Below, piece after piece: positions 1 through 7,797 of a DNA stretch of 64,000 nt. The first letter of the stretch is position 1; each line of letters opens with the position of its first letter. Under the pieces are notes generated by a model. The model saw only the letters and a program-made list of their open reading frames with translations. It was not told the origin of the DNA and searched no databases. Both the position numbers and the translations under genes were made by a program. Source of the DNA: Lepidodermella squamata (taxonomy: Eukaryota > Animalia > Gastrotricha); the NCBI GenBank assembly GCA_047495785.1, contig JBLDXI010000002.1, forward strand, positions 2,542,001 to 2,606,000, written 5' to 3'.

Positions 1-11
1 TGCTCAATTTT

Positions 12-3000
12 ATGGCTAATACAGCAAACCTGGCAGATTTAGCTCACCGCGAGTACCAAGCCGGGAATTACGAAAGAGCGGAGCATTATTGCCTTCGCTT
101 GTGGCAACAAGAACCCGATAACACAGCTGCTCTACTATTGCTAGCTTCAATTCATTTTCAAGCTGGCGAACTCGACAAATCTTCACACTACAGCCAGTTG
201 GCGATTCGGTTGGATCCAATGTTAGCAGAAGCCTACAGCAATTTGGGCAATGTTCATAAACAGCGCGGACAGTTGGTCGACGCATTGCGAAACTATCAAA
301 ACGCCGTTCGTTTAAAGCCAAATTTTGTGGACGGCTACTTGAATATGGCAGCTGCCATGGTGGCTGCCGGAGACCTGGAACAAGCGATTCAAGCATATAT
401 CACAGTCTTAACAATCAATCCAGTGAGTTTAAATTCAAATGAGTTCGATTGATTTTTATATTTCTGTGCGATATATTTCAGGATCTATATTGCGTTCGAA
501 GTGATTTGGGGAATTTATTCAAGGCCCTTGGAAAGCTCGATGAAGCCAAGGTTTGTTGTGTTTCTCATCTTATTTTATGTATAGGCCACTAACATAGCTT
601 CACTATTTATGATTTCCTATATGGTTACGGCTTGAAAGATATATGAGATCACTTAATAACATGTTTATTTTGATGCTTTTCTTCACACCAACAACAGGCA
701 TCAGCTCGAGTATCAAGTTGTTATCTATTGACTACGTAGAAAATACCCAGAAACTCGAGCTGTTTCACGGGGGCTTGAAATTGCAAAATTTGTGGGTTTC
801 TAATTTCTTTCTTCAAAGAAATTCATGATGTGTTAAACGGCTTGGGTTCTATGTATAAATGAAGTCAAAGTGGAGGTGATGCCCGCTTCCTACTCGATGC
901 CGAGCCACGCGCAATCTCTTCTCGCCTGGAAAGGTTTAAATTGATTCTTTCTGCCTGAAGGTAAGGCGGCGGTCTCAATCACTACCACGCTGATTGTATG
1001 TTTGCTGTTGATATCATACACATAACGGCTTGCGATTTTGATCCGCTATACCCAATCTCAAAAAACTTGAAATCTGGATCAACTTGAAGAATTTTACATT
1101 TTCCTGCAATTTGACGTGATTACCCCGACCATACGTTATGGAACCATCTTTGCAATGTTTGAACGAGTCGCGAAATCAGTCCAATCAATTGTAAATGAAC
1201 CTAATTTTACGTGTGATGTTCGAAATTGGACTGGAGACGTGACATAGTGTGGAGTTCTTCGCAAAGATTTGAATGGCTGTTATTCAAATATAAGTGAATC
1301 AGCCAAATTTATTGCGACGAGTTTCACTGAATTTTTCTGCAAAAGTGGTTTTACAACGTTGAAGGCGCCGTTAAAATCGCATGCAATTGTCTAATAATTC
1401 CATTTCAGGAGCTGGTGTGATATTGAGAACTTGACATTAATATTGTTTTTATTGCGGCTGATCCAGGCTTGTTACGTGAAAGCTATCGAATCTCAGCCGA
1501 CGTTTGCTGTCGCCTGGTCAAATCTGGGTTGCATTTTCAACGCCCAGGGCGAAATTTGGCTAGCGATCCATCATTTTGAAAAAGCCGTCCAGCTCGACCC
1601 GTCTTTCGTCGACGCCCACATCAACCTCGCGAACGTCCTTAAGGAGGCTCGAATTCTCGACCGAGCAGCTACTGCCTATGTCAGAGCGTTACAGTTGTGC
1701 CCGAATAATGCTGTTGTACTCGGAAACCTGGCCTGCGTGTATTACGAGCAGGGCCACATTGAATTAGCCGTTGAAACTTACAGAAGGGCGATAGAATTAC
1801 AGCCTAATTTTCCTGACGCCTACTGCAACTTGGCGAATGCTTTGAAGGAACAAGGACGGGTGGCTGATGCTGAAAGGTGTTACGAAACTGCTTTACGGCT
1901 ATCCCCAGGTCACGCGGATTCACTCAAGTATGAATGATTAAAATTAAAAAATTTTAAGGCGGAATTTTATATTTTTTTCAGTAATCTTGCCAATATCCGT
2001 CGTGAACAAGGCATGCTGGATGAAGCAGCTCGTTTGTATCGGAGAGCTTTGGAGTCTTGCCCTCATTTTGCGGCGGCTCACTCGAATTTGGGCAGTTTAC
2101 TACATATGCAGGGCCGTCTGGATGAAGCGCTTGTTCATTACCGCGAGGCGATTCGTATCGCGCCAACATTTGCTGATGCCTACTCAAACATGGGTAATAC
2201 CCTGAAGGAAATGGGCGATGCGGCCGGGGCGCTACAATGCTACATACGTGCGATCAGTATTAACCCATCATTCGCCGATGCTCATTCTAATTTGGCGAGT
2301 GTTCACAAAGATTGCGGCCAGATTCAGGAGGCTGTCGTCGCCTACCGCACTGCCCTTCGCCTGCGACCTGATTTTCCCGATGCGTATTGTAATTTAGCGC
2401 ATTGCCTTCAGATGATTTGCGAGTGGTCTGACTATCAAGACCGGATGCGACGAGTTGCGACTATTGTGAAAGAGCAGCTTGAACGCGGCCGGCAACCGTC
2501 AGTTCATCCTCATCACTCGATGTTGTACCCTCTGTTAACCCATGAGCAGCGGAGAAAGATAGCCGCAAGTCACGCTCAGTTGTGCCTCGACCGGGTCGCC
2601 CCGCTTCGAGCGCTTTTTCAGCCAAAACCTGAGATTATTTCCTCGAGTAACGGACAGCGGCTGAGAATCGGCTATGTCTCGTCAGACTTTGGAAATCACC
2701 CAACTTCACACCTTGTTCAGTCAGTTTTCTTCAACCACGACCGCTCGAGGGTTGAGGCGTTCTGTTACGCGTTGAATGGCGACGACGGCACAGCTTTTCG
2801 CTCGAATATCACCCAGGAGGTTGAGCATTTCGTCGACCTGAGCGCCCCGGCTTTCACCTGCCCCCGCCGGGCGGCCGAACGAATTGCGGCTGATGGTATT
2901 CAAATCCTCCTTAATCTAAACGGCTACACTAAAGGCGCCAGAAACGAGATATTCGCCTTGAAACCAGCCCCGATACAAGCGTTATGGCTTGGCTATCCGG

Positions 3001-4686
3001 GTACCAGTGGCGCGTCATTTATCGACTATTTAATTACTGATACGATAACATCGCCGCCAAATGAGCCAAGTTCGGATGAGCAGTACTCGGAGAAATTGGC
3101 TTTTATGAGTTCTACGTTTTTCGTCGGTGACCACATGCGAATGTTTCCGCACCTTCGTAATCGATTGGATGTGACTTTTGTCATAAATCAGGCCGACCCG
3201 GCCGTCTCTACGTCACTCACCGTTGTATTCAATAGCTGTAATATCGACACGATAGTTCGTGCAGTTGTTGCCGATGTTTCTCGCTTGAGTGGAGTTGCCC
3301 CGGTCCCAGTTGCCGTTACCTCGGCTAGTAATATCCCGGAGCCCGTTGTTTGCCAATGGTTTTCAGCCAGGATCGAATGCCCGCCCGGGTCGTTTCAACA
3401 CCCTATTGTTTCTATGCTTCAAAACGGGCAGCCTCATGTGTTATGGAACGGCGTGCTTGTGATAAATGGTCTTCACTTAGCCGCATTGAGGCCTCGAGTC
3501 GGGTCGGGCGAAGAACCGTTCCCCCACAGTGCCTGTGTCCCCAATTCGAGCCCGGCTCAAAGTGATGAGAAAAGCGATTTCTCGCAACTGACCTACCCAC
3601 TAGCCGTAGCAACTGCACGTTGTCAGTACGGTTTCCGCGAAACTGGACCGATTCTCGGCAACTTCAACCAGCTGTATAAACTAGACCCGGAAACTTTTTC
3701 AAGTTGGATGCGAATATTGCGTCAAGCTCCCACTGCCATGCTTTGGTTGTTGCGTTTCCCGGCTGCTGGGGAGCAGAACGTCCTGCTGGCCGCTGATCGC
3801 GAACAGCAGCAAGCCGACTTTCAATCGAACAAAATCACTATCCCAAATGATTTATTAAGGAGGAGAGTTATCTTAACGAACGTTGCGACTAAGGAAGAGC
3901 ACGTTCGACGCGGCCAGTTGGTCGATGTTGGTCTAGACACTCCTTTGTGTAACGGCCATACTACGGTAATTTTTATGAAAAAATGTGAAAAATTAAAAAA
4001 ACCCACCTTAATTTTTTCAGAGTGCTGATTTGCTATGGACCGCCGCTCCTATTGTTACGCTGCCCTTGGAGACATTCGCGAGTCGGGTAGCTGCCAGTCA
4101 ACTCGCGGCTCTCGGAGTCGGAACTGAGTTGACGGCGATTGATCGAAATAATTACGAACAAATCGCGATTAATTTGGCGACAAATTCGTCATTGCGGCAG
4201 CAGTTCCGCACCAAGATCTGGGCCGCGCGGATTAGGTCGCCGCTATTTCGAGTAGATTTATACGCAAAAGACCTGGAGGATGTGCTGGCGAAAATGTGGC
4301 AAGCGCACGAAGACCAGAATAAACATTCTCCAGTCCCTGCTCAACCACAACAGCAGCAACAACTGCATCCTCACCACTCGTCTTCAGTCGAAATTCAGTT
4401 GAGGCAACCCAGTAGTAATAATCCGGTGCAACAAGCTGCGGTAGAACCCGACCACTCATCCGCTCACAACTTAGCAGAAGATCATCGAATTCGTAACCCG
4501 GGCCACGCGTTCAGTTCGGTCGCTGTTAGTCGTAGCTCTCTTCGCTCGACGGTTTCAGCCTCGTCTGCCTCGACCGTCCAGCCGGCTGGTTCGTTGAGCA
4601 ACAGCCCTGGGCGGTTGGTGAATAACCACAACACGCACGACTACTACTCGTCACACACGCTCGATACAAACATTGGCTCGCACTAA
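12..4686 (+). CDS. OGT: O-GlcNAc transferase (TPR repeats + GT41 catalytic domain), 5 coding exons: 12-422, 482-550, 1467-1927, 1982-3965, 4021-4686
   Basis: The spliced translation matches animal OGT: [108 protein letters not shown]. All four GT..AG junctions keep frame. Confidence 0.97.
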
Positions 4687-5076
4687 AGGTGGCGGCTGAC
4701 TCTTCTTCTGCTTCAAAAAATTATAGTTATTTTTCTGAAAAAATTGAGTGTGAAATTACAGTTTTTTACAGTCGTGTTACTTCCTCGACACTGAGTGGGT
4801 GGCTTTGCGGTTTCTTCTTTTCTTTATCTCGCTCTCTTTGTACGGTGTTTCAGAAGCATTGTCGGCGAGCTCGCGCTTCTTTCGATTATTTGATGAGATG
4901 ATGATACAAGTAATTATTGTTGTTTTTGGTTTTAAACTCGCGCAAAACATCGAGTGTTATATATATTTGATGGTGAACACACACTGCTTTGATGAAATAA
5001 AAATGGGTATAGCTGTAAAATAAATTATTTCGCGAATATAATGTTGAAATAGAAGTTAATTAACGAAAACCGAACA

Positions 5077-7797
5077 ATGGCGTCTGCTGCAGCGCTCTCC
5101 GTGGAGCTGCTGCTCAGTGATATCAAAAGAGTAAGGAAAATGAGACGCCCGTGCGGTAATTGCTTCATTCTACACTAGGAAATGACGTGCACCGTCTGCC
5201 GGCATTTGTTCGAGGAGCCGAAAATTTTGCCGCAATGTGGACATACGTTTTGCGAAATTTGTGTCCACGACTTGGTGAAAACGCAAGAAGATGGCGTTAA
5301 GATAGTGAACTGTCCGAGTTGCCTTTGCAGGAATCAAATTTCAGGAAGTAAAATTTGATCAAATTTTATTCGAATATCTGATTTTTCGATTCTGCATGAA
5401 GATCTCGCTCCCGATTTGAAATCAGCACAATGCGTCGGAATGATCAAGATGAGCTGTGCCAACTCTGCTGATGATGTTAAAAAATCGGATATCCAGAGAT
5501 TTCAGACGGTAAACTTTCACTATTTCGTGTTAACTACAAGCTTGAAAATCGTTTGATTGATAAGTTCATGGATTCGAAATCGTTTTTTGAAGAGAGATTG
5601 CAGGACAGTGCCGACCGAGCTAGATTCGAAATCGCTGATCTTGCTTTTGAATTGAAGTCGTTTTTCAATAATCTGGTCGATGAGAAAACCAGCGAACTGA
5701 CCCATCACTTGGACCAGCTTTTATCTGTCAATCAAGAAAGTTTTCTTAGGGAGGACGATCCAGATGATGGCCAGACTTCATTAGCAACAGTACCTATTTA
5801 TATTTTCTGATTAATTAGAATCTTCTTTGATGTTTCAGCTTATAGAAAGGATGACTATCGAGGCTAAGGAAATAAAAGAAAATGATAACGTTAGACCCTC
5901 GACCCTTCTAGCCTTCCATGACAATGTTGCAGCTCTGAAGAAGGTTTAGCGAATTTTTTTCCAAGGTGTAAAAAATTGAATTTTGCTATTTTGAAGATAT
6001 TAGCCTCTCCGAAGGTTTTGCCCCAGGCACTTGTGTACCTACGTGATGGTTGCTTGAAGGAGAGACTTGAGGAACTCCTCCAACTTGGCCTTGGACATTT
6101 TCAAACTGATCTCGATAATGGCGATTTCGTAATCTCCTATGCTCTCTCATTTCTCATACAATTTTTCGATTTTCAGATTTCCAAACCGTATCGGTCTACG
6201 CATTTAGTTCGCTGTGCATTCGTTAACCTTCCGAAGAAAGACGAAGCGCCATCATCCGAGGAGCAAAATTCAAAGAAGCCAAATCGAAAGCCGGGTGAAG
6301 ACTACCTAAACCCTTGCAACGTTTGGGACTTTCCCGGCTCAACTTCAATACTGGCCTTGCATTCGCCGGAAGGAATTACAACCGGCTATCAATACCTAAT
6401 GGTTGGGTTTAGAATTAAAATGACTGAAACGTATTTTTCTGATACTTCAGTTAGTCGATGCCGCGAGCCATACATGGCTTGCTTCTATCACACTTTTCGA
6501 TTCCGCCGAAGTGGACAAATTGAAATTGGACACACCCGAAATCGAAGAGGCAGAGAAGGCTTACGCGTTATCGATTAGTGTCTTGACTACCTCTTCAGAT
6601 GGCTCCGTGTATTTCGTCGACGAAGCTAAAGATTTTCAGATTTTTACGTTCAAAATTGATTTCAACAACACTGGGAAGCATTTGAAAGTCGTACCTGAGG
6701 TGTTTGCCGCTCTTGATGATTTTGAAGAGAAGAAAGAGGAAAATGGAGGCCAATATTTTGGCGGGATTTCTTTTGAAGAAAATCGCAAAGAAATATGGGC
6801 GTCGGTGAACAATTTTTGCAAGGACGTGAAGCGAGAAAGTTGGCTCTACTGCTATTCGGACAGTAAAGAACTGAAATTGCGGGTTGAATTGCCGTTCAAT
6901 TCGCCGGATGTTATCGCTGTTCATCGCCAGTCCAGGGATTCTGATCCTTTAGTAGCGATTTCGGTATTCGGAGGAGACTCAGTTCCTTGCCTGCTAGCCT
7001 GTGGCCAAATTTCAGGCGATCAAGTTGAGGAATTGAAGTATATTCAGCCTCGCCATTCCGGTGACGAAAAAACCATTCGAGATCCGTTAGCTTTACAGCA
7101 CATTCGAAATCTAAGGTTCGACCCGGCTGGGAATCTGCTGGTTCTTCATAACTGCGGTCCTTGCGATTCCCGTATAGAGGTCAGCTTTGCAATTTCCCGA
7201 ATTATTAATTAATTCCGGGATTTTTCAGGTTTACACCAGCCCAGACTTCACGTTGTCCGGATTCATTCCCAGATCAAACACCCTGTTTTCGACTGTTCTA
7301 GGGGGTAATTTTATGATCTTCGATAATATGATTTTCTAGTTATTTTCTGATTTTTTTTAGAATCTGGGGATTTGATCCAAATGAACGGAATCGCTCTAAT
7401 AAAAAATGATAGGAACCAGATTGATCTTCCTCGATTTGCTCACGGATCTTACAACTATTGCGCGTCTGGCGACGGTCAAACCGTGCTTGAAATTCTAAAA
7501 ACAAACTACAGGGAAGAGTCTGACTACGACGAAATGGAGCTGGAAACTGCTTCGGACGGCAGCTATTTGGAAGATACTGACGAGGGCAGCCTAGACGAAG
7601 AAAACCCGAATCCGAGCAGTGAAGATGCTCAAATGGAAATTGAAGCGGAAAATGAAAGCGATAGCGACGAATCGATAGCCGAGCTACTAGACCCGCAGAC
7701 ACATGGCCTATGGGATCTTACGGCCTTCGTCACAGATTTCACTCGCAACCCTGTCGTTATTGTTGCTCGCGGTGATAGGCTGCTGTATTTCAGCTGA
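5077..7797 (+). CDS. RING (C3HC4) + coiled-coil + NHL-like beta-propeller protein, TRIM-NHL-like paralog A (~10 exons)
   Basis: ATG 5077, intron 5131-5178, then CTVC..FEEPKILPQCGHTFCEIC..CPSC. A helical region follows, then beta-rich repeats including QHIRNLRFDPAGNLLVLHNC..DSRIEV, an acidic loop and terminal LLYFS*. Confidence 0.8.

Follow-up and report, generated by a model that had tools for sequence, protein, structure and literature searches.

The gastrotrich Lepidodermella squamata carries, in the OGT gene that opens the 64,000-nucleotide stretch of DNA analysed here (contig JBLDXI010000002.1 of assembly GCA_047495785.1, positions 2,542,001 to 2,606,000; hereafter the window), a single intron that greatly exceeds its neighbours in length. 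The gene lies on the plus strand and has five exons separated by introns of 59, 916, 54 and 55 nt, and the 916-nt intron (551..1466, +) occupies, by its sequence context, the place of the intron whose detention maintains O-GlcNAc homeostasis in vertebrates, a well-studied circuit. Our favoured explanation, to which we give somewhat better than an even chance, is that this intron is the animal's own copy of an ancient regulated OGT intron, known in vertebrates as detained intron 4, and that its length has been kept for an internal cassette and for splicing feedback. Three lines of evidence point to a wide invertebrate circuit of this kind: the orthologous intron is the longest in most of the mapped genes, it is the sole intron kept in contigs that are otherwise spliced, and stop-bearing cassettes of human size are found within it.

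That the 916-nt intron exists and is removed at its predicted sites is shown by contigs of a cDNA run (X1, in which a SMART-type adapter is seen as a loose end) that join 550 to 1467 with GT..AG ends; contigs of the same run join 422 to 482 and 1927 to 1982 in the same manner. It is a phase-0 intron that begins GTTTGT, a donor without the usual purine at +3, and ends CCAG, and it separates a 69-nt exon of 23 residues (482..550, +), ending ..KLDEAK, from an exon starting ACYVKAIE (exon 3; 1467..1927, +), which is supported by reading frame and cDNA. Annotated OGT proteins were placed exactly onto their own genomic loci for intron mapping in eight invertebrates (Lingula, Helobdella, Elysia, Ridgeia, Drosophila simulans, the mites Oppia and Brevipalpus, and the wasp Ampulex), and in all eight the 69-nt exon lies between two phase-0 introns, as it does here. 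The human counterpart of this exon ends ..LEEA(176)K and is followed by A178CYLKAIE (PDB chain 7yeh_B; a protein-level match). With the human side taken from this protein segment and from the literature, the comparison puts the 916-nt intron at the place of vertebrate OGT intron 4. The first-pass annotation of this DNA had described one OGT intron of 916 nt beside three of 54-59 nt and had equated the 23 residues of the 69-nt exon with human exon 4; the gene model and the cDNA joints bear out the first statement, and the human protein segment, in agreement with PMC4901358, bears out the second. Nine tetratricopeptide repeats (TPRs) are left after the boundary, in line with human mOGT, which starts inside human intron 4 and yields a product that is without the first three TPRs and has nine left (PMC4901358).

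Seven of the eight annotated invertebrate OGT genes have no intron longer than the orthologous one. It measures 2501 nt in Lingula (longest of 21), 2175 nt in Elysia (longest of 20), 2592 nt in Ridgeia (longest of 18) and 3277 nt in Ampulex (longest of 12), and 3152 nt in Helobdella, 1661 nt in Oppia and 274 nt in Brevipalpus, where the other introns span 89-305, 61-232 and 65-195 nt, respectively. The remaining gene, that of Drosophila simulans, has an intron of 149 nt at this place (L004:9278-9426) and other OGT introns of up to 5.5 kb; we regard the fly as a probable loss of the long version and not as the invertebrate rule. Compact genomic loci from the metagenome collection described below follow the same pattern, with 2541 nt against ~60-120 nt (L051), 2012 nt against ~62-67 nt (L069), 2439 nt against 68 nt (L012) and ~1845 nt against 56-110 nt (L052). 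The naive chance of the longest-intron pattern, with the window included, is ~1.6e-9, a figure that shared ancestry makes less extreme in truth. Compared with the remaining donors of these genes, those of the orthologous intron are weaker (p=0.012), with G at +5 in 55% as opposed to 78%. Taken across species, these measurements make it very unlikely that the length of the 916-nt intron is an accident. An unconstrained long intron that came to lie at this place by chance would have a prior probability of 1/4 in a gene with four introns, and such an origin would agree with internal splice-like sites that are jointly at chance level and with the lack of retention in the one cDNA run (see below for both). 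It is difficult to reconcile with what is seen across species, where the same intron is longest both in seven of eight annotated genes and in independent compact genomes, and the central 438 nt of the intron, invariant between isolates whose flanks differ by ~3-4%, speak against it as well; we therefore consider this explanation distinctly unlikely.

A scan of a metagenome collection with exon 3 of the window OGT gene as the query returned 80 OGT loci, most of which are contiguous over Lingula residues 165 to ~1020 and hence are without all other introns. Since relatives carry 8-22 introns, such contigs are taken to be RNA-derived. Thirteen of the contigs of this spliced type are also spliced at the orthologous intron, and about 19 are spliced everywhere else yet unspliced at this one position; in none of them is a different intron retained. 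Six contigs contain both flanking exons and, between them, the complete intron from GT to AG (L010, 1741 nt; L019, 2641 nt; L026, 2550 nt; L033, 2246 nt; L035, 1707 nt; L043, 1326 nt), and two spliced/retained pairs, L009/L010 and L025/L026, are each 99.8% identical. About ten contigs start within the intron and have an AG just before exon 5 (L015, L016, L022-L024, L029, L037, L038, L042 and L044), and in another two, L013 and L018, exon 4 (the counterpart of the 69-nt exon) is joined to an internal acceptor with the rest of the intron kept. Finally, inserts of 145 nt (L028:606-750) and 170 nt (L036:737-906) are found between exons 4 and 5. Because these inserts have no GT/AG ends, are not multiples of three in length and both contain an in-frame stop, we interpret them as spliced-in cassettes. 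The mite cassette of L036 is conserved in the central part of the Oppia intron (L006, ~901-1087), to which it aligns between ..TGATAG and GTAATA.., and L028 is clearly not a vertebrate sequence. In three related species, the retained introns contain invariant blocks made up of overlapping acceptor-like and donor-like words (L019:1620-1930, L026:1520-1830 and L033:1020-1330), the blocks common to all three being AAAGTCAGTAAATGGTATGAGC (a 22-nt run), GGTAGTTTCAGG and TTGCAGGTTTCT.

In a tree, the retaining contigs group with Daphnia, close to insects, among mites, with clitellate annelids and as neighbours of Elysia; two slowly evolving marine groups of them could not be placed. Selective retention of this intron and stop-bearing cassettes within it thus exist in other invertebrates. 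In the literature that we searched there is no report of OGT intron-4 detention, or of an intron-4 cassette, outside vertebrates.

The ten or so contigs that begin within the intron and extend into exon 5 could also be internal starts, as would be expected if the intron holds a DNA-level element, either an enhancer or an internal promoter for an N-terminally shortened OGT like mOGT, and has kept its length for the sake of transcription. The position of the intron near the 5' end of the gene and the mOGT start inside human intron 4 (PMC4901358) are consistent with this idea. Against it, the whole-intron contigs (at least six), the two internal-acceptor joints and the two cassettes are splicing events and not starts; the window has no in-frame ATG in the stretch from 1409 through exon 3, and 1467 shows no loose end of the leader type; and even within mammals the frame of mOGT is not maintained (PMC4901358). 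A DNA-level element is possible though unlikely as the reason for the length of the intron, and an internal promoter or enhancer may coexist with splicing control.

Splice-like sites inside the 916-nt intron were scored with a matrix derived from 109 mapped introns of OGT genes, and significance was assessed against dinucleotide shuffles. The internal donor GAAG/GTAAGG (961..966, +) scores 10.0, higher than all four real donors of the gene (7.2-9.6), and this score is reached by 3.4% of the shuffles (p=0.034). An acceptor, TTTCAG, at 1408/1409 scores 8.3 and would, if used, extend exon 3 by 58 nt (1409..1466, +) and read E L V stop. Both sites had been picked out in the first-pass annotation, as a strong donor and as an acceptor leading to this same short reading, and both hold up under scoring; the acceptor at 697 that it had called good turns out to be weak (3.9 at 697/698), the one at 818/819 being better (5.4). 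Our best candidate for a decoy or poison cassette is the 142-nt segment 819..960 (+), which is preceded by the pyrimidine-rich acceptor ..TTTCTTTCTTCAAAG, would read K F M M C stop, and holds further donor-like sites at 876 and 934. Its length is near that of the human cassette (143-153 nt) and those of invertebrates (145-187 nt). The longer version first proposed (698..960, +; 263 nt) would use the acceptor of score 3.9 and reach a stop after 13 codons. A strong acceptor-like site, TTATTTTATGTATAG, is also present at 584-585 (score 9.3); lying 34 nt into the intron, it is too near the donor for joint use.

The intron was compared with a second run (X2), which is DNA from a slightly different isolate. 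X2 holds the whole 916-nt intron collinearly and has 0 differences from the window in 622-1059 (438 nt), whereas flanking non-coding DNA differs by ~3-4%; 1060-1441 contains 12 differences, and 561-621 contains 5 together with an insertion in one of the haplotypes. The comparison points to constraint at the intron's centre, a shared haplotype being another possible cause. Two haplotypes are present in X2 (seen over 441-466, 561-621 and 1703-1826), one of them with a 2-nt deletion at 457, a TTCTC insertion after 561 and 7 differences in 124 nt of exon 3, which means that heterozygosity is high in this region.

Intronic cover in the X1 cDNA is patchy, with a depth of 19 (about 60% of the exon depth of 31) over 777-860 and 881-977 and of 1-4 over 1051-1330. 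All of it comes from contigs with strand-switch joints (860/977, 1103/1217, 1112/1186 and 1162/1236), the cover of 777-977 being one chimera in which 881-977 is joined to the reverse complement of 777-860. This pattern fits self-primed cDNA of unspliced or excised, non-polyadenylated intron fragments. We rejected the 777-977 cover as proof of a retained decoy region, as it is a single strand-switch chimera from a library with other chimeras and adapter read-through, and single odd X1 contigs deserve little weight because the library contains chimeras. In another X1 contig, which covers 25-110, a SMART-type adapter precedes 25 and 23 unrelated letters follow 110.

The confinement of the depth-19 cover to 777-977 would also be expected if a snoRNA or another small, stable RNA were hosted by the intron at roughly this place. 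Beyond the chimeric origin of that cover, the evidence goes the other way: Rfam gave no match at E<=1 in 1-6000, and its hit for the intron alone (E=7, minus strand) is attributable to chance; in a box C/D pattern scan, neither strand of the intron showed the combination of C box, D box and terminal stem; and the fold of 770-985 is ordinary (z=-0.77). We regard a hosted RNA as very unlikely. More improbable still is that the length stems from a recent transposon insertion, which the first-pass annotation had itself named as a competing cause. In the 64-kb window, self-BLAST detected no second copy of the intron or of any piece of it, direct, inverted and tandem repeats within it are chance matches, the seven longest intronic open reading frames have no Pfam domains, and the intron is whole and collinear in the second isolate. 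Nor did the introns turn out to contain a second, mutually exclusive version of the exons that flank them, a result of little weight as the query consisted of two short consensus peptides.

Several observations weigh against the 916-nt intron being a regulated intron of the vertebrate type. In this animal, no X1 contig reads across either of its boundaries, cover is zero at 561-770, and no X1 junction is seen at 698, 819, 961 or 1409, although contigs drop rare forms and this is weak evidence of absence; where the first-pass annotation had looked to retention and to junctions at 697, 961 and 1408 for support, the X1 contigs show only the spliced form. Its description of the internal sites as decoy-like does not go beyond chance for the set as a whole, the best acceptor-donor pair (819-960) being matched by 17% of shuffles (p=0.17). 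No similarity was detected between the 916-nt intron and the introns of other species (blastn and tblastx returned low-complexity matches only, with no common coding piece). Protein word searches and the metagenome scan found no closer relative for a conservation test; with exon 4, and with the exon-4 open reading frame extended to 696 aa (against proteins to ~1218 aa), the word searches gave nothing above 55% identity. The RNA origin of the metagenome contigs is inferred from their missing introns, the sample type being unstated in the collection. Lastly, the 149-nt intron of Drosophila, which has no element like the intronic splicing silencer (ISS) of vertebrates (PMC5588854), indicates that the feature can be lost. 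The original proposal, that the intron resisted genome compaction through conserved splice-based feedback, therefore stands in part: position, length, and the retention and cassettes of other invertebrates speak for it, and the single cDNA run of this animal, the chance level of its sites taken jointly and the lack of intron similarity elsewhere speak against.

If the 916-nt intron is indeed a copy of the regulated intron, it would normally be removed with GT at 551 and AG at 1466, and its extra length would most likely have been kept for an internal cassette whose ends resemble splice sites. The likeliest candidate, 819-960, would be closed by the strong donor at 961 and lies within the invariant block 622-1059. 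Engagement of this cassette by the splicing machinery would leave the flanking halves of the intron unspliced and the RNA detained; alternatively, the cassette would be spliced in and introduce an early stop codon. Either outcome would give less productive OGT mRNA and so could provide negative feedback on OGT dosage. By analogy with vertebrates we infer that the same switch is used in this animal, with the cassette chosen as above and the O-GlcNAc level as its signal. A self-regulating OGT switch is probably much older than the vertebrates, as the distribution of the orthologous intron and its cassettes would indicate. The stronger proposition, that the bilaterian ancestor already combined selective detention of OGT intron 4 with a stop-bearing decoy cassette, that the combination did not arise in vertebrates and that it was kept even where every other intron shrank to ~55 nt, with 916 nt near the minimal unit of an O-GlcNAc-sensing switch more than half a billion years old, is in our estimation evenly balanced between true and false.

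The remainder of the gene is compact. Exon 1, the first visible coding exon (12..422, +; 137 codons encoding TPRs), is identified by its open reading frame and homology and by a cDNA contig over 81-422 with the joint 422/482, at which the 59 nt of the first intron (423..481, +; GTGAGT..TTTCAG) are skipped. Exon 3 is followed by the 54-nt intron (1928..1981, +; cDNA joint 1927/1982) and by exon 4 (1982..3965, +; 661 codons), which encodes TPRs and most of the catalytic region and is supported by reading frame and protein searches. The 55-nt intron (3966..4020, +) is placed by frame and homology, and the last exon (4021..4686, +), as read from the sequence, has a long low-complexity tail and ends with the stop TAA. 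The predicted protein of ~1196 residues forms a long branch, with ~54% identity to the OGT of other animals, and its low-complexity tail, at 4300-4686, is rich in Q, S and H. The next gene downstream, at 5077-5350 and ~390 nt past the OGT stop, reads as a RING-type cysteine pattern (C..C..C.H..C..C) with introns of ~48 nt.

The retaining contigs are crustacean-, mite-, annelid- and mollusc-like and, if the interpretation given here is true, the OGT circuit extends beyond vertebrates and the switch becomes open to study in small, tractable animals. Very short versions, such as the 916 nt found here and the 274 nt of the mite Brevipalpus, could then narrow down the essential elements, and the resistance of one intron to genome compaction would be explained. 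To our knowledge, the sensing factor of the vertebrate intron-4 circuit is still to be identified.

Among known systems, the closest is the detained intron 4 of vertebrate OGT, which contains an intronic splicing silencer and a decoy or poison exon (Park 2017, PMC5588854; Parra 2018, PMC6097662; Tan 2020, PMC7261177; Govindan and Conrad 2025, PMC12017769). The literature describes conservation of this element only to jawless fish, with no comparable element in the fly (PMC5588854), and reports no homology of the element in fly, worm or zebrafish (PMC4901358). The intron described here resembles it in lying in the same gene at the same position (after ..EAK and before ACY..) and in being far longer than its neighbours, and differs from it in size (916 nt as opposed to ~3.7 kb) and in that the boundary-spanning contigs of the one cDNA run show the spliced form; detention, decoy use and a response to O-GlcNAc would here follow by analogy. 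Each of the four RNA forms of human OGT (PMC7261177, PMC6097662, PMC12017769), namely the productive mRNA, the RNA with the intron detained, the form in which exon 4 is linked to the poison exon, and the form with the poison exon spliced in, has a counterpart in other invertebrates, in which the cassette is 145-170 nt, compared with 143-153 nt in human, and in which clusters of overlapping weak splice sites are likewise found. Drosophila sxc/OGT shares the 69-nt exon and its phase-0 introns but, unlike the gene studied here, has a short intron at this place and long ones elsewhere, and another long intron is credited with its control (PMC5588854). A wider parallel is provided by the decoy-exon class of SR protein, ARGLU1 and SF3B1 genes (PMC6097662), in which a non-coding cassette with competing splice sites likewise lies in a long intron and the mRNA dose is set by unproductive splicing or detention; the products of those genes are RNA-binding or splicing proteins with their own RNA as a target, whereas OGT is an enzyme and must act through the factors that it modifies.

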